Shown here piece by piece: positions 1 to 25,918 of a stretch of 64,000 nucleotides of DNA. Position 1 is the first letter of the stretch. Each line of letters opens with the position of its first letter. The DNA is from Epithemia pelagica. Taxonomy: Eukaryota; Protista; Bacillariophyta. The translations under genes were made by a program, and so were the position numbers. The notes beneath the pieces were generated by a model. The model was not told the origin of the DNA and searched no databases. It was given only the letters and a program-made list of their open reading frames with translations. The stretch lies in contig OX337239.1 of NCBI GenBank assembly GCA_946965045.2, positions 496,001 to 560,000 of the forward strand, given 5' to 3'.

Positions 1-977
1 ATCAATAAGCACATGTGAGGAGTCAACTGTGTGCTGTACGGAATGCTTGCCTTAACGTCGTAAATGGATCTGAGAAACGAAACGCAACCATCCTTCGTGG
101 AGGACGAACACTCGGATCAGTATACTATATGGATTGTGTCTTGTGAATTGGTGGAGGCTTTGCAGCAAGAAAATGATTCGAACCACACCCTGGGTGTTGG
201 ATTCCTTCCCGTTGGACTGCACGAGATTCTGTGGGACCGCCGGATGATATTCGTACCAGCGATAATAGGAGGGTCAGTGTCTGTGGAAGAATGCAGTTCC
301 AAACAATGGGATTGAGACAGGATGCTTCTTCCAAACGTTGAAGTGGTGTTCTCGTTTTATAAAAACTGTCTGTGCACTACAAAACGAGTTTGCAGTCCGA
401 CTGTGCGTTTGAGTACTGGAGGCCCCCGCCACAACGATTGGAACCCATGTCCTTGACATTTTGGACTCTATCAACACTACCTACTTTGGGTGATGAACCG
501 ACGATTCGACGGTACCCGAGGAGGCCCCTTTTCATGGTCATAGGCTGTTTCTATATTATTATACGGGATGGAGTTCTCGTCTTTTTGGATAGATGGCGAA
601 TTGGCAAACTTAGTTTGTACATGAGGAAGAACTAGTCCGAACGTATGGAACGATACGTCGCATCGCCTTGTTTTGCAGTGGGCACCCACTTGTTTTCGTT
701 GCTGCATGGTAAGATGAATGTCACACAGCGAGAGAAGAGGCATTGTGCATGGCATCCTAGTGAAACAGTCGAACCACGAGTCCACAGAAGCACTGGTCCC
801 AAAGACGTGGAACTGTACTTTGCGCGGCCCATGCAAGTGACGGACTGTGTTGGATTGAGTGGGCACCCACGAGTTCTCCTTTGCTGCTGGATTTGGTGTT
901 GGATTCTTGTTGGCCAACGAGAATAAAAAATACGCAATACTGCGAATAGGATCTATCCGAGCAGTAAAATGCCACAA

Positions 978-1002: not shown

Positions 1003-2235
1003 ACAGAAACAGGCGTTGGGCCAGGTAGTTGGACATGGTCTCTTGGAAAGTGTCCGTGTGGGATCCGAATCTTGGTGGGGAGAACAAAAGCACGAGTCAA
1101 CAAAAGAGGACAGGGTTGGAGAATCCAAACCAACCAGGTGGTGCGCAACCATTGTGGTTGCCGAATGGACATGAGAGAGTCTCCGCTAAAAGCTGGAACA
1201 ACCCTACCATCAAAACCAACCAACAACAATGCCTTGTATTATAGGTACACGTGACGGACCGTGAATGCAGTTCTTGGAACCAGGACTGTGTATACAAGAC
1301 GACGACGAAACACAAGAGTCATCCTGCAGCTTCTTCTTCTTTTTCTTCTTCTTGTTTCGACATTCGTACACTGTGTGTTTGGATTTTGGATGGAACACGT
1401 ATTCTATACACATGATATTTGCCAACCAAAGTTCAGATTGTGGCAACGAACTCTCGTCCGTATCGCACTCTCGTCCGGCGTCGGGGTGGACGGTTGCTCT
1501 GGGCAATAGATCAACAGGGTGTCACTTAATCGATGTTTGTATTCGCCCCACGTTTCTCCCGACTGGGCTTGCGTCTCACGTAGTATTGCCTCGTGTAGAG
1601 TTGGTCGCATTTGCTAGATAGGCCGTGACACTGACCACACACACAGCTCAACAAAAGCATCGAGCGCGGGGGATGTGTGGCTGGTCACGTTTCAAGATTT
1701 CTGGGTGACGAGAAAGAGAGGTGCAATGGAGATGATCTTTTGACTTGCTTTGTGTGTTCGAGTGCCGAAAGTTACTGTAGAATTAGTTGCTTCGTTGGTT
1801 TTGTTGCGGTGTCAAGAACAGACCGAGAGAACGAGAGATTGAATGGATTGATTGATTGATTCATTCCTTATTATACTTAGCCACGTTCCAAAATTTCATC
1901 CGCAAAAGGCAACACACAAGGACACTGAGTTGGAAGACGCAAGAGCGGGGAACACAAAGCTCTCTCCTCCAAGGTTGCCGCAAAAACAAAACCACGAACC
2001 ATAGAGAGACACGAAAACGGATTTCTATTGGTGAGACGGGAGGACGGAACCATGAGTCAATCGTCCAATCATCATGATGATAGTCATCATGGTGATCCTC
2101 CTAACAAACCATCCTCCATGACACAATCAGCATCACCAGCATCTTTTTCACCCACACTATCTCATCCATCATCTCAAGCAGCAGCCGCCACAACTACAAC
2201 AACAACAACAACAGGAGCGACGGAAGAACGCTTGT

Positions 2236-3111
2236 TTTACAAAACAACAGACCGGACATCTTCACCTCTCCCAGACTTGCTTGATCGACGCTATCCTTGA
2301 TGATCTGCGATTACCAGCGGACACAAATACTCGTGACGTGCCGGCAGCAACCACAGTGAAGATGCGCGCCGATGATGATGGGGACCCCTTTGATGGACAC
2401 TTCAACTATCGCTCGGTCATCGGGAAACTGAATTTCCTCGAGAAAAGTACACGACCTGATATATCCTACGCAGTACATCAATGTGCACGCTTTTCCGCGA
2501 ATCCAAAGCAGGTACATGGACGAGCAGTAAAGCAGATTGGGCGCTACCTCGCTGGTACACGGTCACGAGGACTAGTGCTCAAACCACAGGACAAAGAAAA
2601 TTTCGACGTTTATGCCGATGCCGATTTTTGTGGCAACTTCAACAAGACAGAAATACCACGATCAGACATGGCCCGATCCCGTTCCCGATATGTCATCTTT
2701 TATGGAGGTTGTCCCATAGTGTGGGCATCAAAGTTACAGTCCGAGATTGCACTGTCCACAACGGAAGCGGAAATTATCAGCCTCTCTACTTCATAGCGTA
2801 CAGTCATTCCACTTATGAACATTACGAAAGAGATGAAATCACTCGGCTTCCCTGTCCTGTCAACACAACCCAGAGTACATTGTCGAGCTTTTGAAGACAA
2901 TAACGGAGCTTACGAATTGGCTACGGTCTATAAGTATCGACCACGCACGCGATACCTCTGTACCAAGCTATTTCATTTCAAGTCCTATGTCGAGAAGAAA
3001 GAGATTACGATCCTCCCTTGCGATACGGAGTTGCAGACCGCGGATATCTTTACCAAAGCACTGGATAAAGAGACGTTCGAGCGGCATCGCACGCGTATTA
3101 TGGGCTGGTAG
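2236..3111 (+). pseudogene. 5'-truncated Ty1/Copia pol remnant (RT C-terminus plus RNase H)
   Basis: Motifs YRSVIGKLNFL, TRPDISYAVHQCARF, VYADADF, WASKLQSEIALSTTEAE, FEDNNGA and QTADIFTK. In-frame TAG at 2794-2796, after which the same frame continues to stop 3111. No gag, integrase or 5' LTR upstream. Confidence 0.93.
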
Positions 3112-3137
3112 TCAGATTTTCACGCTGCGTGAGGGAG

Positions 3138-3591
3138 TGTTCGAATATTGTACATGCGGGCATATGTAACTGATGGGGACCTTGGGGGACCGCAGACGCA
3201 AACCTCATGACTCCATTAGGCCCAACGCATCATCGAACCGCCTTTCACAAAATGCAAAACGACGGACGATGGATCCAGGCGACGATGCCTATGTAACGAT
3301 CGACAATGCCTATGTAACGATTGTCGTTCTTAAGGACGGGATCCCATGACCATTGTCATAACGGTCCATGGCCCTAAGTGAATCAGAAGATACTTAGAGG
3401 CAGCGATATCCCACGAACGGTGGCAGGCCCGTCCATAACACATCTCGTCGCCCAAATTGGTGACATAACGTCTCCACCAACGATTCAACGCATCGATGAC
3501 AGTAGGGAACGGAGACGTAGTACCTAACACCGTAGACACACAATTTTGCAACAAGAGTCCTTTTCTTTACTCGCTAGTAAGGAAAACAACA
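3138..3591 (+). mobile_element. Probable 3' LTR of the truncated Copia element
   Basis: Purine tract GAGGGAG (3131-3137) is followed by TGTTCG at 3138. The segment ends near ...AAAACAACA (3588-3591), where Kelch homology begins. Contains a 21-bp tandem duplication (GAC(G/A)ATGCCTATGTAACGAT, about 3281-3322). The right end is approximate because no partner LTR is present. Confidence 0.6.
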
Positions 3592-3768: not shown

Positions 3769-4264
3769 GGTTCCAAACAGTGACTGCAGAATAAATGAGG
3801 ATCGAGACTCTGTATTGTGCGAGGGTCGTGGGTTTGCTGCTCCTGTGATGCGGATGGATGCGGACTGGAAGCACGACTGACTTGACGAAACGGATGGATC
3901 GAAACACGAGCGATCGTCGCGAGACAGATATGGACCGCAACAGTCCCACAAAACCACATATATTCTATGAATTCGGAATACCACCGTGGAGGTGTTTGGA
4001 TGATATCGAACACAAACTCCTCACGGCGAGACTGACAACCACTGATGTGGGATCCGAAAATGAGGGGCGATCCAAGAGATGAAGTGGGGGCCTCCAGAAT
4101 GTAGGGGCGGCATCTCGGTTTGGGGGATGGTATCTTTTTCGTACATTCTCGATCCATCTCACCTTCTTATTACGTATGCGTATGGGTTCTCCCTCGGATC
4201 CTCGGCTCTTGACTCATGTCTGGGGACGTCAAGCCTTATTGCTCCTTCGAAAGACCTTTGAGGT

Positions 4265-4580
4265 TGACACCACGATGCACAGTACTAGGACAGGACGAAA
4301 CTGAGCTGAGCCAGTACCACGAGAACGACCGGCACCCGTCATGCTGGACTCCGAGGCATTGCGCCGAAGACCAGCAGTACTAGCAGGATGGAACAACAAC
4401 TGGTCAAGTCACCCTGGAACATTTACTACGACCGACACATGCACTGTCCAATTTAAACAAGTTTCTCGCCATGTCTCCATCCACGGCCTGTGCAGTGTCG
4501 GCGCTCGGTATTTGGTGGGAACCAACAACCAGACAGACTGCGGAGCCTTCCTTGCATGATTGTTGGAGTATAGTACTCTA
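4265..4580 (+). repeat. Dispersed degenerate repeat, copy 1 (partner at about 8388-9090)
   Basis: Shares blocks with the 8.4-9.1 kb region, including ATGCT(G/C)GACTC(C/G)GA, CAGGATGGAACAACA and GGGAACCAACAACCAGACAGACTG(C/T)GGAGC. Confidence 0.7.
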
Positions 4581-16987: not shown

Positions 16988-17575
16988 AGGATTTACAGGA
17001 GCAGAACGCAGTGTTCAAGTTGCAAGTTGGTCACCATTTTTGTACCGCCTGACGGGCGTTTCGACGGGCGTTGCTTCGCCAAGAGCATGCAAAGTAGTGT
17101 TGGGGTAACGGTCTCATTCTGATGGGCACGGGGAATCAAGACCTTGTCCACCTTGGAGACTTGTCCCCCCAGTATTCTAATGATAAGCTCCAGGAGCTGG
17201 AGCTACGGCTCGTTCCCGTTCAATTGGCCGCCTCCTGCGTTCCTTGTTGTTGTCGTCGTTATCCAACAAAACACAAGACACAACAATCAAACAAAACACA
17301 CTTGGTTCGCTCTTCTTCGTTGTCCTCCGTCTCATTTGAGAGCGATCATGGTCTTGTCGAGACTTGGTTTTGAAGAAACCAGCAAACAATCCAGCGTGTA
17401 AACAAAGCTAGTTTCACATTAGATTCTCGTTAGTTACTACTGTGACATGTTTCGATTAGCGTACGCAGAGCTCGTTTGGGGCCTGGCCATCACAAGTCTC
17501 TTCAAAAGAGAATCATAGTCTCTCACACGACGACGACGACAACAACAACGCTGTGACATGGATTGTCATTCACAA

Positions 17576-17643
17576 TAGATGTATGAATAAACATCGATCA
17601 CTATTTCTATAGATGTATGAGTTAACATCGCCCACTATATCTA
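17576..17643. repeat. 34-bp tandem duplication
   Basis: TAGATGTATGAATAAACATCGATCACTATTTCTA followed by TAGATGTATGAGTTAACATCGCCCACTATATCTA. Confidence 0.85.
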
Positions 17644-17691
17644 TTGAATACTTGAGATGGCGAGAACGTTTGCCGTGTTTCGCATACCTCC

Positions 17692-20600
17692 TCAACAGGA
17701 ACTAGAGGCCATGGCGGCTTTGTAAGAAGAGACCATGTCTGGCGGCAACTTGATTTCACCCCGGTTCACCATAGTCCGGAACCGATCTTTGACTTGGACA
17801 TTGGTCCGGCGGCACAGGCGGTTGTCGCAATTGTCCTTGATCATGCGCCATTTGGGACCAAAGCGCATATATCCTTCGTATACCGCCTCGCTTTCGTCAG
17901 CGGTCCAGGCATTACGACGGCGTGGTGCCGATCTAACACTCACCGGATCTTTCCATATCTCATCCTCATACTTTTGAGTTGACAACGGCGCTGGAGCTGC
18001 ATGGGGGCCGTGGCCTGGAAGATTGACTCGTGCCCGTTGGGAGGATCCGCCGACATTCTGACTGGCTGGATCGACAATCTCGTCATCCTCCACATCCTCA
18101 ATCATTAACCGGAAGGATGATCGCGATGGCGGTGGTCGTGGTAGATTCAAAATAGGAGCCGCGGATGCGTTTATCGTTCGATTCACTTCGGTCCTGGATA
18201 ATTTTGGTGCTGGACCATCCGCCGTCTGCACGGTGGATTCATCTCTACGTCTCTTATCTCCCTGCGGTGAATATTCCTCCTCTTTGATTGCAACCGCTGC
18301 GATTGGGGGAGGTTTGTCTGAATTTCGCTTTGTCGTTTCGCTAGGAGCATTCCGTCTACCAGTGGGAGATGTTTCATTCAAGACGTCATCCTTCTCCTCC
18401 TCGTTGTCATCATTGAAACGACTGGGCATGGTAACATTCTCGTCCATTTCAGACGTCGCAGACATGCTCGCGGTGCGTTCGGCAGCCGCACGTTTTGCTT
18501 CTGCTTCACTCGTCAATTCTGGGACAGCCGCAGCGGCCACCTCTGCCGCAGCTGCGAGGGACGTAACCATGGACGATCGTAACGCATTGCCGCTTTGTTT
18601 CAAAGGAATCGACGATGGCTCTCGTTGTGATTTCGGATGACTGCGCGGCGCTTTTCGTGGAAGATGTTGCCGAACAAAGTTGTCTTTCTGAGCACCATTG
18701 GCATCCTCGTCTTTGGTTTCCGTCTGAGATTGATTGCTCGTGCTCGGAGTCTTGGATGTCTCCACAGATGATTGTTTGAGCTGGTGCTGCTTTTGTCCTT
18801 GGACTTGTTTCATGTATCGCTCTTTCGCATCTTCTTCCTCCCAGGCTTTTTCCTGCCGACGAAGCAGGTCCGAATCATCTTCCTCATCCTTGTCGTTGTG
18901 TTGTCCTTCCTCATCCTCTTTCTCTCCGTTCCTGTCTTTGCTTTCCCCAATTTGATCTGGTGGCTCTTCTCCATCCGTTCGACTCGTGTTGTTGTTTGAC
19001 ATGTCTTTGAGAAACTGTTCCGGATACTGACTGTCGCTGTGGAAGTGGGCTCCATCTGGTTCGGGTCGAAAAAATCCCACCCGGCGCTTATTGGTGGAGG
19101 ACGGGCTAGATACGGAGTTGTTGGTTCGAAAGGAGATTCGTCGCAATCGCGTTTCCTGTTCCTCCTCCTGAGACAAGATTTCGCTGTGTGCATTCTCTCT
19201 TTTGGAAGTGGAAGGTGTAGTGGATTCGGCATCCACGGCCGAGTCTGGGTTGGTACGATGATCGGACGGAGGTGGATCGGGTGCTTGCAGAGATGACGAC
19301 GCATTAGGCGATGACATTCGCGGCATGGTCTTGGCCTTTTTGGTAGTTGTACGTATGCGACTCAAACTCTTCTCGTTGCTCCCTCGTGGACGGCGTTGTG
19401 TCGATGTGGACAAGCGAGATGTTGTGGGATCCGCTTCACCACCCTTGTGGGGGCTGCGCGAATGGGTGGCCACAGCTACTGCAGTGGTTTCGTCTGGCAT
19501 GCCATTGGTTTCCAGGTCATTTTCCTCCTCGTCGTCCATGCCATAGCTGGAAACATCGTCCTGATCATGATCTTCATCGTCCATGGCCACTAGGGGAGCT
19601 CGTACACCTCCATAACCCAATTGAACAAAGGTGGGAATTGTCAAGATACGTTCCGACCATTTCAACAACAAATCTCGTGACTGGAACAAGAGTTTGGCAG
19701 TCGGAGTAAAACATTAAAGGTCAACAAAAAAGAGGTACCATACGAAAACGTAATGCAATGAGAAAAAGAATCCACATGATAAAACAACGATTCAGTCCTT
19801 TCATTCGCACACCTACCTTTTGTTGGAGTGTGGCAAAGGAATACGTGGTGGATGCACCCAATGAAACGGCGAGAGCATCATCGTAGAGGCCTTGCGGCTG
19901 AGGATCCATCCCATCCAATTGCTTTAAAAATTGGGTGAGCGAGGAGGGAAGGCCTCTGTTTCGTGCGGTGGTGTTACCTTCGGAAGAAAAGATGCGAAAC
20001 AATGCCGACCTGTACTCGTGCACGGCTTGTTCGAGGCTGGCCCTCTCGTCACCACCACGGCCCAATGGTACGTCTGTTTCTTCTCCCAATCGTGATGGTG
20101 GCATGGCAGGAGGGTCATGAGATGTCGTACTCTGGAAAGATTGACGCATAATATCTTGCAATCGTTGTCGAAACGTGGCCAGAACTCGTTGAACTTGAAG
20201 CAATTGTACCACATGTCGAAACTCGGCTTGAAACATGGCATGTTCGTGCACCGCATCACCGTCTTGTGTCTTTTCCTCAAGATTTGTGTGGTTCCGGTTT
20301 GTTGTTGTTGTTGTTGTTGTTGTCGTCGTAGGGTTCTCTAACAACATATTGGCGGTGGGTTGCAAGCACGTTTGACGCACCGCACGAAATTCCTGTTCCA
20401 AGGCTTGCCATTCTCGAGCCGGAATACGGTGGGCCGGTCGAGTCAAACCTTCCGTATCGCTTCCATTCCAATCGTCCTCAGGTTCATCCGTTGCGGAGGT
20501 CTGCAGACATCCCAAGGAAATGGATAAAAAGGCAATTTGCAAACGGGTCCACAAGCGGCCCCGACGGATCAAGACACTTTGGTGGTTATTCCTATTGAGA

Positions 20601-21001
20601 TGGCCTGGAGTGTTTGTCCGCTCCTCGGTTCCGTTCCACGAAACAGACAAGAGGACTTGCAGGGCCGTTTGCAAATGACCATAGTCCTGCACGAGAGCGG
20701 CCGTGGAGGGTGGTTGTAGACAGGCGAGATGGGCAAAGTATTCCACCACATCCATTTGGGATTGCGACAAGCTCGGCCGATCGGAGGGAACATTGGTAAA
20801 GACTCGTGATAGGGACCGCGCCAGGCGAGGACCGGACGACGACAATAATCGAGATGGAGGAGGAGGAAGTTTGGGAGGGGGAAGGTCTGATGTAGATGAA
20901 AGCGAGAAAAGAGATGTTTCGCGCGTTGTGGCAGAGAGTGCCGTTGCCTTTGGTGGTTTGGTCATGTTGGTTTGGGTCGCAATATCTCTGTTCTCCGACA
21001 T
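17692..21001 (-). CDS. TRF-like telomere-repeat-binding protein candidate with a C-terminal telobox Myb domain (2 exons, about 1057 aa)
   Basis: Exons 21001-19817 and 19680-17692. The 136-bp phase-0 intron (AAG|GTAGGT...TTCCAG|TCA) joins the two long ORFs in frame. C-terminal RRRNAWTADESEAVYEGYMRFGPKWRMIK...RTNVQVKDRFRTM is a single Myb repeat of telobox type. Confidence 0.8.
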
Positions 21002-22249
21002 GATGGGCAGAATAGAACGAAAACTGACTCTTTCTTTCAATCAACAGGACGAAATCGTCTCATTTGTTGCGGTTCTTGGTCTTGTGTTGTTGTTTTTCCA
21101 CAGACAATATGTCAGGTGGGAATCAGCGTGGGTAAAGGCAATCAGGAACGGATGGGTCGCTCGAAACTGTTGCGTTGTGGTTTAATAGGGGTAGAGAAAT
21201 CCGGTGGAATTCTTTTTGTTCGTTTGGAACACCACACGCTCTACTTTTGTATGTTGGATTGACTTTTCTTTTGGTGCCGAGACAAGCTAATGAGACAAGA
21301 ACAAATGAAAATGACATGAAAGACGATGGAAGTGAATCAATGAAAGAGAGCGTTCATCGCCCGTCTTGCTTCCTTTTGCTTGCGCGTTGGTCGTTTTGAA
21401 AAAGAGTGTAGAGTTCGTCCGCCCGCCCGTAGAAGGGCACGCGCAGAGAAGGACGATGGTCGCGCTATACCCACGTAAAGGGTAGCTCACAAAAGGGAAA
21501 GGTAGCAAGATATAATATAGAAGTACTCCTCTATTATTGCTCCATATCTCCTATGTACTTTGAATTTTCCATCGAGATGCGTCCAACACAACCAGGAATG
21601 GTTCTTGGGATTGGGTTTATGGTGTTGATTGTAGACCTATATGTGCCCTAACAGAGTATTTTGAACTATATTGTAACAGGCATGCCTTTTTTGCGTTGGA
21701 TAAGAGCCGTCGTCGTTCAGAAAAATCAAACATGTCGACCGGCTACGACAAAATCGATCGGATTGGGAAAGCGAGAGGACCGGTAAGGTCGTCATGGCCG
21801 GCATCGGACGACATAGCTATGTGCTGCTTATTGTTGCCCCGAGTTAATCGCATTTTGGTCGCTGTAGTTTGGAGAGTGCAAAAAGGATCGATGTGTATCC
21901 AATTCTGGATGGGAAATGGGAAAACCACCCCATGGGTTGCGCTGTTGTATCCATCGACAGCGGCATGGATTGTGCGGTTGTTTCCATCGAAGGTATCATG
22001 GTTGATTCACTTTCAATGATGATAGACGTAAACAGATGCTAGAACGATGTCATTGCCTTGGAATCTACTCCGTACCTAATACCCCACGAAATTGGTGCGC
22101 CGATGATGGATCCTTAGCACCCGGAAACACGAATCAGGTGAGACGTGATCAAGACGTTCTATTTCCATCATTACGAGCCTCTGTCGTTCAGACGCAAAAA
22201 CGGAAACCGAATCAGGGAACCACAAAACAACAAGAGCTCTTGCGAAACC

Positions 22250-25200
22250 ATGGCGACCTCAGGTACAGCAGAAGCAGGTCTTTCCGTTCAAGTCTACGGT
22301 GAGAAAACCAGTTTGTCCATTACGGTTCGAAAGGCGGTGGTTAGTGCACCGGATCGACCCTTGCCGTTTCTGAACCAACAAGTGTTGGTATCGGTCCAAT
22401 TGGAGCTTGTCAATGAAACGGTCAACAAGAACACGGTCGCTGCCAAGTTGCATTGGACGCTTCCAACTTCTGCTTCAGTAAAGCGGTTTGAAATAAAGCG
22501 AGACAGTGCGGATGGAAGTGATGATGGTATTTGGTATCCAGCCACGGCCGTACCCAAAAAGCAAGCCGCCACAGTTGTGTACAAGGAAAAGGAAAAGGGC
22601 CGAAAGGTTGCCTCGGTGGCTCAATCATTGGCTGCATCCAACGTCTTTGAAATGGAACTATCACCCCTGCCCTATCAAACACCTGTGCAATGTCGAGTGG
22701 AAATGCTGCTGCAACACTCGGATGTAGGAGAATTGGTTGCCCTCCTCGAGACTAGTACGCAGAGCTCAACCTCCAAGATGCCCATGACGGTCGAACGTGT
22801 GACAATATCCTCATCCAGTAGTGACGATAACGACGCCAAGATAATGAAAAACGGTGATTTTGATCGCCCGAACTCAGCCGGTGCCGTTGTGGGGACGTGC
22901 TTTGGTAACAAGACGCACTTTGTTTGTCATATCCCACCTCTGGAAGAGATTGTGGATGATCTAGAACCTCGCAAGCCAAGTACGATTCGTCGAATGGCTC
23001 TCTTTCAAGATACCTCTGTTTCCATGATCCCCACAAAGGCTCAGGTTACAAACCGAGAAAGTCGATTGCGTCAACTCTTCTCCGAAGCCCAGTGCAATCT
23101 CAAGAACGATGAAACGGTTGTCATGGAGTTTTACACCTTTGACATGGTGGAATGCCGTCCACAGGGGGTCTATTCTACAGCGGACGACTTGCTCCATGCA
23201 ATGTCTGCGGTTGACTATGAGGGTGGGACGAATATTTCCGTCCTACTTCCCACAGTGTGTGAATTGGCTAAACGGAAAACCAATGTTGTAGATTGTGCCT
23301 TGATTGTTACGGATGGTGTCGACTCAACGGCCTCCACAGCATCGCCCATAACCAATGTGCTTCCGACTGTCCCATTTCCAGTCCATTGTATTACCGATAC
23401 CACAAAGATTCATGGCCCCACCCTGTCTAGTTTGGCAGCCATGTGTCCCAGCCGACCAGGGGCTGTTTTTACCAAGAAAGACACCTCCTATCTTCCAGGT
23501 ATCCTGTACCCTCGCGCGATCCTTCGTCGCATCCAGACCAACCAAAGTGACCAAGCCTTTTTGCAAGAGATTGATGATGTTTTTTGCTGCGTGCCAGATC
23601 ATCGGCTTGCCGTTCTGAATCAACCCATTCATCCAACGGATGGTTTGCTAATTTCGGGAATTCTGGCCGACAAGGACAGCAAAACGAATGACGAACGACC
23701 CGATCCAGTGACGGAACTTGTTGCAGAGATTGTAGTAAATGGAGCGGTCTACAAGCTGTGCTTCAATTTTGATTCGTCTCGCAAGTGGGAAACAACCGCT
23801 ACGGATTGTGAAGTAGCCGATGCTTGCACCACCACACGTCGTTGCCCGACACTCTTTCTGGATGATAGTTCTACTGAACACCAGTCGGGTTTGGCTGGAA
23901 ACAGTGATTTGGCTCGGATTCTGGGGCATTTGTATGCGGAACACGTGTATCGACAAACCCAACAGGATGCCATCAAGTCGGGCATGAGTCTAACATCGCT
24001 CTTGCAAGAGATTGCCGCAACCTATGGTTTCTGTAGCCCGGAAAGCACCTTGCTCATGCTCTATGAACGCGAGCAATTTCTGGAACACGACATTGCACCT
24101 CCTCTGGGACATCCTTTGGAACCAGAACTTCGAGATCATTTCCAAAAGAAGGTGGCTCTCGGTGAAAAGAATCCCCAGAAACATGACGGAGAATGCATTC
24201 CGATGGGTGAGCTTGGCGGTCTCAAAAATGAAGTACAACGAAAGGGTGTTGTGAGATTGGCCCAAAGGCTCAACGACTTTTTCTCGGCGCCGCCCATGTC
24301 ACGGAAAGTTTTAGAACGTGCAATGCCACCTTCAGCACACGAAGAAGAGATGGAGGAATGCTGTGTGGGATGCGATGAGGAGGAAGAAGAGGAGGAGGAG
24401 GAGCTTTGGTACGGAGAGACAGGCGGGGGGCTGTGTTATCGAGAGACAGCAATGAACCCGTATGGTAGGGCCAGCGAATCTGATGAGGACGACGCGGAGA
24501 GCTTTGACAGCTCGATGCATAGTGGAAGGTCCGAGGCTGAGGAGGAGGTCCATCAAATCGGCGAGCTTCGCAGTGGGCGGGAGATTGAGAACTCCGCTGT
24601 CCGTGTAGGTGGCTTGGGTCGTGCGCTTGGCTTTCCGTCTGCGCCAGGAAATGATTCAAAGAAAAATAGTGCTGGAGGAGACGTCTCGGTTGCAACTGAC
24701 GACAGTACCAAAAAGAAGTGTCTACCGAGAGCAGCAGAGGAGTACATGCAATCTCTTGAGAGTCGCATTCAACCAGTCGTTAGTGAGAAGAATGGCTCTG
24801 ATGAACGCATGGACAATGACCCAGATGATGGATGGAAACTCGTGTACCGAAATGAGCTTGAATCGTACGGAGGTTATGATTCTGCTTCACCTTCCTTGTA
24901 CTTGAGCACTGCTCGCGTTTTAGCCAAAGTCGGGCGACTGCAAGATGCAATCCGAATTGCCACCAATTGTCTTGAGAGTGGCCTTGACGATGCTCAAATG
25001 CTGCGAAGCGTTGGGTATGTTCTGCTTTCAATTTCCACCCCTCAGGCATTGGGACTGGCAATTGCTGTGTTTGACAAGGTGAAACTGCTTCGACCAACCG
25101 AACCCCAAAGTTTCATTGATTCAAGTCTATCGCGATTCCACAAGTGGTGGAATGCATGCTTTCAATCTGACAACATGACCACAGAGGGAACGAGTTGGTC

Positions 25201-25918
25201 TTCCGACGTAGATTCTGCACACCGTGAACTTGCGACGGCTCAGGCGGACCTGGTACATGTATTGAAACATCACTGGGCGGAGAGATTCTCGGAAGTCGAA
25301 TGGCCTGTGTTAATTCTTCTTCATTACTGCAAGGAGTTGCTCGAAGCTTTGCGACAAGGTTCTACGGATCGCATCACACAACTATCCGAATGGCCCTCAG
25401 ACGCCTTGGACTTATTTCGTGGAATGGACGACACAACGGACCCTATCACATGTGAATTGCCATTGTATTGTCCCAAGTTTGACCCAGCGTTGATGGTTTG
25501 GCTTGGCTGGGACACCGACAGGACTGATGTAGATTTGCACGTCAAAGAACCCTCGGGAAATGTCGTTTACTATGGTGACAAAGAAGGAAAGGAAAGTTGC
25601 TTGAGTCGAGACTTTACCAGGGGATATGGTCCCGAAGTGTATCTGGTGAAACAAAACAGCGAGACCTTACCTGGAAATTACGAAGTGTCTGCAAAGTTCT
25701 ATGCTTCGCATCAAGATTCAGCTTTGACCGGAACGACCAGTGCGGTCGTGTGGCGGATGGAGAAGATCATAACCAAATCCATGAACGGAGCTTCTGCGGA
25801 CAGCCAAAACAACCAGAAAGGTGCTTGTTCTACCAAGAACCGACTCAAATTCGACTTCGTTCGTTTGCAGACTCGGAAGCAGCAGACACATGTTGCCACA
25901 GCAACTATTCCCAGTTAA
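22250..25918 (+). CDS. VIT - vWA - TPR - DUF2135 multidomain protein (1222 aa, intronless)
   Basis: N-terminal VIT-like region (LPTSASVKRFEI...WYPATAVPKKQA...NVFEMELSPL). vWA MIDAS-like motifs (LFQDTSVSM, YEGGTNI, LIVTDG). Helical TPR-like region. DUF2135-type C-terminus WDTDRTDVDLHVKEPSG...DFTRGYGPEVY. ATG at 22250. Confidence 0.8.
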   Translation: MATSGTAEAGLSVQVYGEKTSLSITVRKAVVSAPDRPLPFLNQQVLVSVQLELVNETVNKNTVAAKLHWTLPTSASVKRFEIKRDSADGSDDGIWYPATAVPKKQAATVVYKEKEKGRKVASVAQSLAASNVFEMELSPLPYQTPVQCRVEMLLQHSDVGELVALLETSTQSSTSKMPMTVERVTISSSSSDDNDAKIMKNGDFDRPNSAGAVVGTCFGNKTHFVCHIPPLEEIVDDLEPRKPSTIRRMALFQDTSVSMIPTKAQVTNRESRLRQLFSEAQCNLKNDETVVMEFYTFDMVECRPQGVYSTADDLLHAMSAVDYEGGTNISVLLPTVCELAKRKTNVVDCALIVTDGVDSTASTASPITNVLPTVPFPVHCITDTTKIHGPTLSSLAAMCPSRPGAVFTKKDTSYLPGILYPRAILRRIQTNQSDQAFLQEIDDVFCCVPDHRLAVLNQPIHPTDGLLISGILADKDSKTNDERPDPVTELVAEIVVNGAVYKLCFNFDSSRKWETTATDCEVADACTTTRRCPTLFLDDSSTEHQSGLAGNSDLARILGHLYAEHVYRQTQQDAIKSGMSLTSLLQEIAATYGFCSPESTLLMLYEREQFLEHDIAPPLGHPLEPELRDHFQKKVALGEKNPQKHDGECIPMGELGGLKNEVQRKGVVRLAQRLNDFFSAPPMSRKVLERAMPPSAHEEEMEECCVGCDEEEEEEEEELWYGETGGGLCYRETAMNPYGRASESDEDDAESFDSSMHSGRSEAEEEVHQIGELRSGREIENSAVRVGGLGRALGFPSAPGNDSKKNSAGGDVSVATDDSTKKKCLPRAAEEYMQSLESRIQPVVSEKNGSDERMDNDPDDGWKLVYRNELESYGGYDSASPSLYLSTARVLAKVGRLQDAIRIATNCLESGLDDAQMLRSVGYVLLSISTPQALGLAIAVFDKVKLLRPTEPQSFIDSSLSRFHKWWNACFQSDNMTTEGTSWSSDVDSAHRELATAQADLVHVLKHHWAERFSEVEWPVLILLHYCKELLEALRQGSTDRITQLSEWPSDALDLFRGMDDTTDPITCELPLYCPKFDPALMVWLGWDTDRTDVDLHVKEPSGNVVYYGDKEGKESCLSRDFTRGYGPEVYLVKQNSETLPGNYEVSAKFYASHQDSALTGTTSAVVWRMEKIITKSMNGASADSQNNQKGACSTKNRLKFDFVRLQTRKQQTHVATATIPS

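Follow-up and report, generated by a model that had tools for sequence, protein, structure and literature searches.

Does a diatom guard the ends of its chromosomes with the same kind of protein that anchors the protective complex on human telomeres? The question is posed by a locus in a 64,000-nucleotide stretch of Epithemia pelagica DNA (contig OX337239.1, positions 496,001 to 560,000; hereafter ‘the window’, to which all coordinates refer), where an earlier note, made from the sequence alone, proposed that two open reading frames (ORFs) on the minus strand conceal a single protein built like TRF1 and TRF2. Proteins that bind duplex telomeric DNA have diversified to such an extent that their very ancestry is disputed. 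The TRFH domain, by which TRF proteins are recognised, is regarded as telomere-specific and has been documented in animals, fungi and trypanosomes, and a review of metazoan shelterin covers mammals, plants, fungi, ciliates and trypanosomes, but not stramenopiles (PMC8653790). Diatom telomeres themselves are of the TTAGGG type (PMC3622300). The TRF-like layout that had been proposed, with a TRFH-like domain, a linker and a C-terminal Myb repeat following one another along the chain, is supported here by fold models and by a Myb profile. On this evidence the product is probably a strongly diverged diatom member of the TRF class of duplex telomere-repeat binders, alongside TRF1/TRF2, Taz1, Tbf1 and trypanosome TRF.

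Two open reading frames, one gene

The two ORFs, of 439 and 665 amino acids, had been linked on paper by a 136-bp phase-0 intron, and this splice is confirmed. Contigs of four public runs (X1-X4), whose types are unrecorded, were aligned to positions 17500-21300. Run X3 resembles a transcriptome: its contigs total 39 Mb, the longest measures 19.6 kb, and coverage stops near 17662. One 722-nt contig of this run, the only contig to show the junction, joins 19680 to 19817 and omits exactly 136 bases, whose ends read CT..AC on the plus strand and hence GT..AG on the strand of the gene. With a slash marking the boundary, the minus strand reads ...ACA CTC CAA CAA AAG/GTAGGT on the donor side and ...TTGTTCCAG/TCA CGA GAT TTG TTG on the acceptor side, so that the junction in the spliced protein of 395 + 662 = 1057 amino acids is ...YSFATLQQK/SRDLLLKW. 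The intron site is conserved in other diatoms. The two ORFs are one gene, spliced as predicted.

Were the intron instead kept, the ORFs would belong to two separate genes or to a mis-joined model, translated apart or not at all. An X2 contig (19463-19792) does span the boundary between exon 2 and the intron, and the unrecorded type of every run leaves some room for such a reading; set against the exact GT..AG junction in X3, a helix that continues unbroken across the junction in spliced relatives, an intron site shared by many species and full-length spliced relatives bearing both domains, it is highly improbable. Runs X1 and X4, which are genome-like with contigs of 440-510 kb, retain the intron, and each of the six indels that the X4 allele shows over a 3.8-kb stretch lies inside it (19703-19811, net -4 bases), as expected for non-coding sequence. 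The X4 contig also carries about 35 substitutions over 17500-19149, scattered through the linker; together, substitutions and indels indicate a locus that is quite heterozygous or variable between strains.

A diatom family with a shared intron site

An exhaustive search of 1.84 billion representative sequences with exon 1 as query returned a family of 34 relatives at the cut-off of E <= 1e-3, and for 11 of these relatives the match reaches E <= 1e-10. The two exons were searched separately, and the junction was represented by the spliced relatives P0030, P0005, P0069 and P0024. Word-based searching was far less productive: in a word-indexed protein collection the exon-2 query recovered, apart from the ORF itself, only P0002 as a close homologue, and a search with the family alignment gave four matches, swamped by low-complexity candidates. 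P0002 lies on a 562-kb contig of the ENA (L001), where the ORF upstream of it is homologous to exon 1 (E 6e-36) and the intron falls at the same codon (...YSFAHVRQK/gt..ag/TRDLLLRWSES). About 15 of the 34 relatives are ORFs of exon 1 in which ...[LV].[QK]K is succeeded by V and, soon afterwards, by the stop; this V appears because the donor GTN is read through. Spliced relatives read ...QQK[VTAS]R.LL.KWSE.IL across the junction.

Alignment of the family (alignment A1) resolves six or seven conserved blocks, between which lie insertions that vary and are in many cases of low complexity: R.RSLS.VFN.LP..LP...Q.D..EY.CH..LLET; YGRL.SRL; W...EQL..LK..LLR.DAN; H.MFQ.DY.EV..LL.VQ..LA..RE.L; A...Y...L...F; IP..L..FLL; and, spanning the junction, YS.A.L..K/.R.LL.KWSESIL.IP.LV..GYGGV. 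Every full-length member (P0017, P0021, P0024, P0037, P0044 and P0069) carries one Myb repeat at its extreme C-terminus and no further Pfam domain. The 90%-identity cluster of P0030 contains a protein of Phaeodactylum tricornutum (XP_002179113.1, EEC49811.1, UniProt B7FVC4), annotated as ‘predicted protein’ or ‘HTH myb-type domain-containing protein’ and about 25% identical to the window protein in the helical domain. Mayamaea pseudoterrestris MPSEU_000098600 is also a family member, and the remaining relatives come from MMETSP transcriptomes and from ENA, JGI and Logan contigs.

Several peculiarities of individual relatives deserve mention in their own right. Many (P0006, P0008, P0015, P0017, P0018, P0030 and others in alignment A1) begin with M-S/N-x-F-L-x-x-L-F-x-S/T-P, a start absent from the window protein (MSENRDIATQ...) and from the L001 homologue; its absence may reflect loss in the lineage or an upstream exon that has gone unrecognised. 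In the full-length ENA gene models of P0017 and P0021, additional hydrophobic residues separate ...QKV from RSLLIKWSES or RALLIKWSES; they look like in-frame read-through of the conserved intron rather than real protein. On contig L001, positions 2176-3159 (-) and 3788-4400 (+) are extremely rich in Asn, Gln and Thr homopolymer coding runs, and exon 1 of the TRF-like gene there has about 220 residues of homopolymer-type sequence ahead of the first conserved block.

A predicted TRFH fold in the N-terminal domain

An AlphaFold2 model built on alignment A1, with residues 55-395 of the window protein as its first row, is all-helical, in keeping with the helical domain that had been claimed for the N-terminal part: ten helices with low-confidence insertions between them (mean predicted local distance difference test score, pLDDT, 81.6; predicted template modelling score, pTM, 0.80). 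Foldseek found no match in the PDB at E below 0.75 and no TRFH domain among the best 50. Exhaustive comparison with the PDB by VIA-align ranked the TRFH domain of TRF2 (3bu8_A) seventh, at Z 7.7 and a root-mean-square deviation of 5.0, with 167 residues aligned over model positions 19..341. Only five of the best 50 rows align 160 residues or more, and three of those five are TRFH-fold proteins: TRF2, Poz1 (Z 6.8, 179 aligned) and Schizosaccharomyces pombe Tbf1 (Z 6.7, 160 aligned). When the 450 candidates of Foldseek were re-aligned, the TRFH domain of TRF2 came first (Z 7.8, 166 aligned), with S. pombe Tbf1 fifth and Saccharomyces cerevisiae Tbf1 13th (Z 5.6), and it is the top whole-domain match of this model.

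Because the window model is without the part of the domain that follows the intron, P0030, a spliced and insertion-poor relative of the Phaeodactylum type, was modelled as well (residues 40-420, alignment A2). The mean pLDDT is 80.3, with most of the core above 90, and one helix (301-318, ...SLAKLQQKVRSLLIKWSESIL) passes straight over the exon junction. Compared exhaustively with 48,161 representative chains of the PDB, this model finds the TRFH domains of TRF2 (3bu8_A, Z 11.0, 182/204 residues aligned) and TRF1 (9hcl_A, Z 9.9, 173/199) first and second, followed by Poz1 (5xxe_A, Z 8.5, 193/220), the helical domain of S. pombe Tbf1 (6k5s_A, Z 8.5, 161/220), IpaD (2j0o_A, Z 8.4, 175/284), the N-terminal domain of S. 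cerevisiae Tbf1 (8x6e_A, Z 8.1, 187/289) and TIN2 (5xyf_A, Z 8.0, 143/192). Six of these seven best chains, drawn from six sequence clusters, are TRFH-fold telomere proteins. Foldseek gives the same model a probability of 0.94 for the TRFH domain of TRF2 (TM score by target 0.50) and of 0.69-0.85 for many TRF1 TRFH entries, with others at <= 0.3. The models thus support a TRFH fold for the N-terminal domain, although the likeness to TRFH that the earlier note had expected is one of predicted fold and has no counterpart at the level of sequence. The note had further seen in the spliced junction a resemblance to the final TRFH helix of human TRF2. The structural alignment of P0030 with TRF2 does stop there, immediately beyond the junction-spanning helix (residue 243 of the TRF2 chain, residue 332 of the model), but the sequence likeness was not confirmed, a profile of the junction region finding no TRF chain among PDB sequences at E <= 10.

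A C-terminal Myb repeat of the telobox type

The C-terminal Myb repeat ending in KDRFRTM is borne out by a match to Pfam PF00249 (Myb_DNA-binding) at exon-2 residues 589-637 of 662 (E 3.3e-6). A Pfam scan of both exons found nothing else, and no second Myb repeat in the 1057 residues. Searched singly against PDB sequences, the window repeat matches Trichomonas vaginalis Myb3 (E 1e-7) and c-Myb R3 (5e-6) ahead of TRF2 (2.4e-5). A profile of six Myb domains of the family (A3), searched against the same collection, has as its best match the Myb of human TRF2 (E 1.2e-13, 54 bits, from a single domain), followed by c-Myb (6.9e-12, summed over two repeats), zebrafish Terfa (6.9e-12), SNAPC4 (1.5e-11), TRF1 (3.1e-10), Tbf1 (3.3e-8) and plant TBP1 (1.9e-7). 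In this alignment the family sequence ...RtnvQikDkfRtm stands opposite ...RTAVMIKDRWRTM (IKDRWRTM) of TRF2, and the basic arm of the family opposite its KKQKW. Helix 3 is KD[RK][FWYH]R throughout the family, and the window reads RRRNAW...VQVKDRFRTM. In the complexes of TRF1 and TRF2 with DNA it is the Lys, the Asp and the second Arg of K-D-x-x-R, together with a basic residue of the N-terminal arm, that contact bases; the corresponding helix of c-Myb R3 is K-N-x-x-N. By its sequence, then, the window repeat is of the telobox or TRF type. A transcription factor of the R2R3 or 3R c-Myb type was considered and rejected, since there is a single repeat whose helix 3 is K-D-R-F-R and not K-N-x-x-N.

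Weighing the assignment

Several observations speak against placing the protein with TRF1 and TRF2. The Foldseek E-values of the P0030 model are only 0.4-0.8, and VIA-align itself cautions that Z below about 13 may represent a chance arrangement in helical proteins. The window model is weaker (Z 7.7) than that of its relative, and the two are not independent, being built on nearly one alignment of about 33 sequences. Pfam PF08558 (TRF) is matched by none of the 35 family members at E <= 10, a threshold at which 43 unrelated families do appear (25 families, among the matches listed, each from one member), and no TRF chain is found among PDB sequences either with the family profile A2 or, at E <= 10, with a profile of the junction region (A5). 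The best PDB matches of profiles A2 and A5, Cry6Aa (0.048) and PA200 (0.24), were taken as chance. Searches of the Atlas by features and by shape gave nothing usable; the single-sequence Atlas model of the P. tricornutum relative has a pLDDT of 0.50. In the Myb repeat the third core Trp is replaced by Phe, and the repeats of c-Myb R3 and SNAPC4 score just below TRF2 with profile A3.

Several of these points would sit comfortably with an ordinary single-Myb transcription factor, devoid of any telomere role, whose diatom-specific helical domain resembles TRFH through convergence or through a bias of AlphaFold. In favour of such a protein are the lack of TRFH sequence similarity, Z values inside the chance range for helical folds, and a Myb repeat for which c-Myb R3 comes near TRF2 by profile and, together with T. 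vaginalis Myb3, beats it when a single sequence is the query. Generic helical likeness, however, does not explain why six clusters of TRFH-fold chains should occupy ranks 1-4, 6 and 7 of 48,161 with nearly the full domain covered, and the domain order, with a K-D-x-x-R Myb at the extreme C-terminus, is typical of TRF proteins; we consider this explanation quite unlikely. Since Z alone lies within the chance range, the argument for a TRF-class protein draws on three things: a single fold family crowds the head of the ranking, the TRFH domain is covered almost completely, and, independently of both, the same proteins carry a TRF-type Myb at the C-terminus.

A further difficulty is that the DNA binding, dimerisation and telomeric location of the predicted protein are all inferred, and the last of these bears directly on a second alternative, namely a general regulator like Tbf1, with the same TRFH and Myb build, that acts mainly at interstitial or subtelomeric TTAGGG-like boxes (promoters and insulators) and not in end protection. 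The Tbf1 helical domains of S. pombe and S. cerevisiae are indeed matched by both models (Z 8.5 and 8.1 with P0030, 6.7 and 5.6 with the window), as is the Tbf1 Myb (E 3.3e-8). Both domains nevertheless score higher with TRF2 and TRF1 than with Tbf1, and we regard a regulator of this kind as unlikely. As the telomeres are of the TTAGGG type, a Tbf1-like protein would bind them too, so that this alternative overlaps with the reading as a telomere-binding TRF protein.

If the protein is a telomere-binding member of the TRF class, two chains would pair through the TRFH-like domain, and each Myb repeat would read a half-site of the TTAGGG type, helix 3 with its K-D-x-x-R occupying the major groove and the basic arm the minor one. 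Such a dimer would coat the TTAGGG arrays at diatom chromosome ends, while the TRFH surface and a conserved acidic motif behind it (GYGGV...DDVSS.G) might recruit partners, much as TRF2 does through its TRFH docking site and its motifs for binding Rap1 and TIN2, in the service of end protection or length control. The window itself holds no telomeric array.

Layout of the gene and its product

The coordinates of the gene and of its parts are collected in Table 1.

Table 1. Parts of the spliced gene and of its predicted product, in window coordinates.
Feature	Coordinates	Strand	Remarks
Upstream ORF	19721..21040	-	439 aa
Downstream ORF	17692..19689	-	665 aa
Short upstream ORF	21037..21063	-	ATG AGA CGA TTT CGT CCT GTT GAT TGA (ATG + 7 codons + TGA), 36 nt 5' of main ATG
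Coding exon 1	19817..21001	-	395 codons; first in-frame ATG at 21001
Intron	19681..19816	-	136 bp, GT..AG, phase 0
Coding exon 2	17692..19680	-	662 codons + stop at 17692-17694; colinear X3 contigs end near 17662
N-terminal Ser/Thr/Pro-rich tail	20768..21001	-	residues 1-78; 46% S+T+P, net charge +5; low pLDDT at model start
TRFH-fold helical domain (predicted)	19621..20767	-	residues ~79-415; intron-interrupted, low-complexity insertions
Conserved motif GYGGVRAPLVAMDDEDHD..DVSSYGMDDEE	19525..19620	-	directly behind helical domain
Long mixed-charge, net-acidic linker	17926..19524	-	unconserved; identified by composition and charge blocks
Telobox-type Myb repeat (by sequence)	17761..17925	-	basic arm RRRNAW, helix 3 VQVKDRFRTM

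Translation starts at M1 or M24, because the first conserved block (RSLSRVF...) precedes all later Met residues. An X3 contig extends beyond 21300, and the stretch with the short upstream ORF is therefore transcribed, in a 5' leader of at least about 300 nt.

The linker had been described as long, acidic and disordered. It is long (about 535 amino acids, residues 441-975), unconserved and of net charge -22, but it is acidic only as the net of mixed charges, in which acidic and basic patches alternate (17.9% D+E, 13.8% K+R, 28% S+T+P); it has no Pfam match and does not align to the L001 homologue. The exception is LGYGGVRAPLVAMDDEDHDQDDVSSYGMDD, which immediately follows the helical domain and shares 68% identity with that homologue, and the GYGGVRAPLVAMDDEDHD..DVSSYGMDDEE motif, although modelled at low pLDDT, is kept in P0005, P0017, P0021, P0030, P0069 and P0070. 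This conserved acidic stretch may be a short linear docking motif.

Within an insertion of the helical domain lie nine Thr codons (TTTTTTTTT, residues ~225-233; window 20289-20335, minus strand), at which the contigs of all four runs break and which are marked as a skipped repeat. A 1257-aa ORF (22145-25918, plus strand) is the divergently placed neighbour of the gene.

Comparison with known telomere proteins

Human TRF2 and TRF1 are the closest known counterparts. A TRFH-fold domain, a long flexible linker and a single C-terminal telobox Myb follow in the same order, the two human TRFH domains are the best structural matches (Z 11.0 and 9.9) and the TRF2 Myb the best profile match (1.2e-13), and the K-D-x-x-R helix 3 and basic N-terminal arm are common to both. 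The diatom protein departs from them in a TRFH-like domain that has neither detectable TRFH sequence similarity nor PF08558 and is stretched by low-complexity insertions, in a linker of about 535 amino acids, in the Phe that stands for Trp in helix 3 and in a loop between helices 2 and 3 that is two residues longer than in TRF2. Its N-terminal tail is rich in Ser, Thr and Pro, whereas the human tails are Gly/Arg-rich in TRF2 and acidic in TRF1.

Fungal Tbf1 (6k5s, 8x6e) likewise joins a TRFH-like helical domain to a C-terminal Myb that reads TTAGGG, but each of its two domains scores lower than the counterpart in TRF2 and TRF1; the budding-yeast protein acts mainly at subtelomeres and promoters. 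The TRF of trypanosomes and Leishmania, from outside the opisthokonts, also combines a TRFH domain with a C-terminal Myb repeat that binds telomeres of the TTAGGG type (PMC2896790; PMC8653790). It belongs to Discoba and not to the stramenopiles, and no trypanosome TRFH chain is among the structural matches listed. Plant proteins of the TBP1/TRFL and TRB groups share a telobox Myb with K-D-K-W-R, and the Mayamaea member of the diatom family has AIKDKWRNL. Plant telobox proteins have no TRFH domain, and what they bear is either an extension of the Myb or a domain of the histone H1/H5 type (PMC12315454); the diatom family has a predicted TRFH fold in their place.

Significance for diatom telomere biology

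In the full-text literature, searched with few subscription journals covered, we found no paper on a diatom TRF, none linking Phaeodactylum with TRFH in the relevant sense, none on Phaeodactylum with TRF2, telobox or shelterin, and none citing the accession numbers of the P. tricornutum relative. The case also illustrates how proteins of this kind escape notice: an intron divides the gene, low-complexity insertions interrupt the helical domain, and structure prediction from a single sequence fails (pLDDT 0.50). The family suggests that the anchoring of a protective complex at chromosome ends in the manner of TRF1 and TRF2 is far older and more widespread than has been documented. Whether the shelterin anchor of TRFH and telobox Myb reaches beyond opisthokonts and kinetoplastids into stramenopiles, and thereby goes back to the last eukaryotic common ancestor or close to it, with a shelterin-like complex in diatoms whose partners dock at GYGGV.AP...DDVSS.G, is a proposition on which we see the odds as evenly balanced. 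A family with a TRFH fold and a telobox Myb across diatoms would bring this design to a third major eukaryotic lineage, and its members would be the first candidate end-protection proteins for diatoms. Finally, P. tricornutum is a diatom with good genetic tools, and its relative XP_002179113.1 would make the idea directly testable in a tractable alga.

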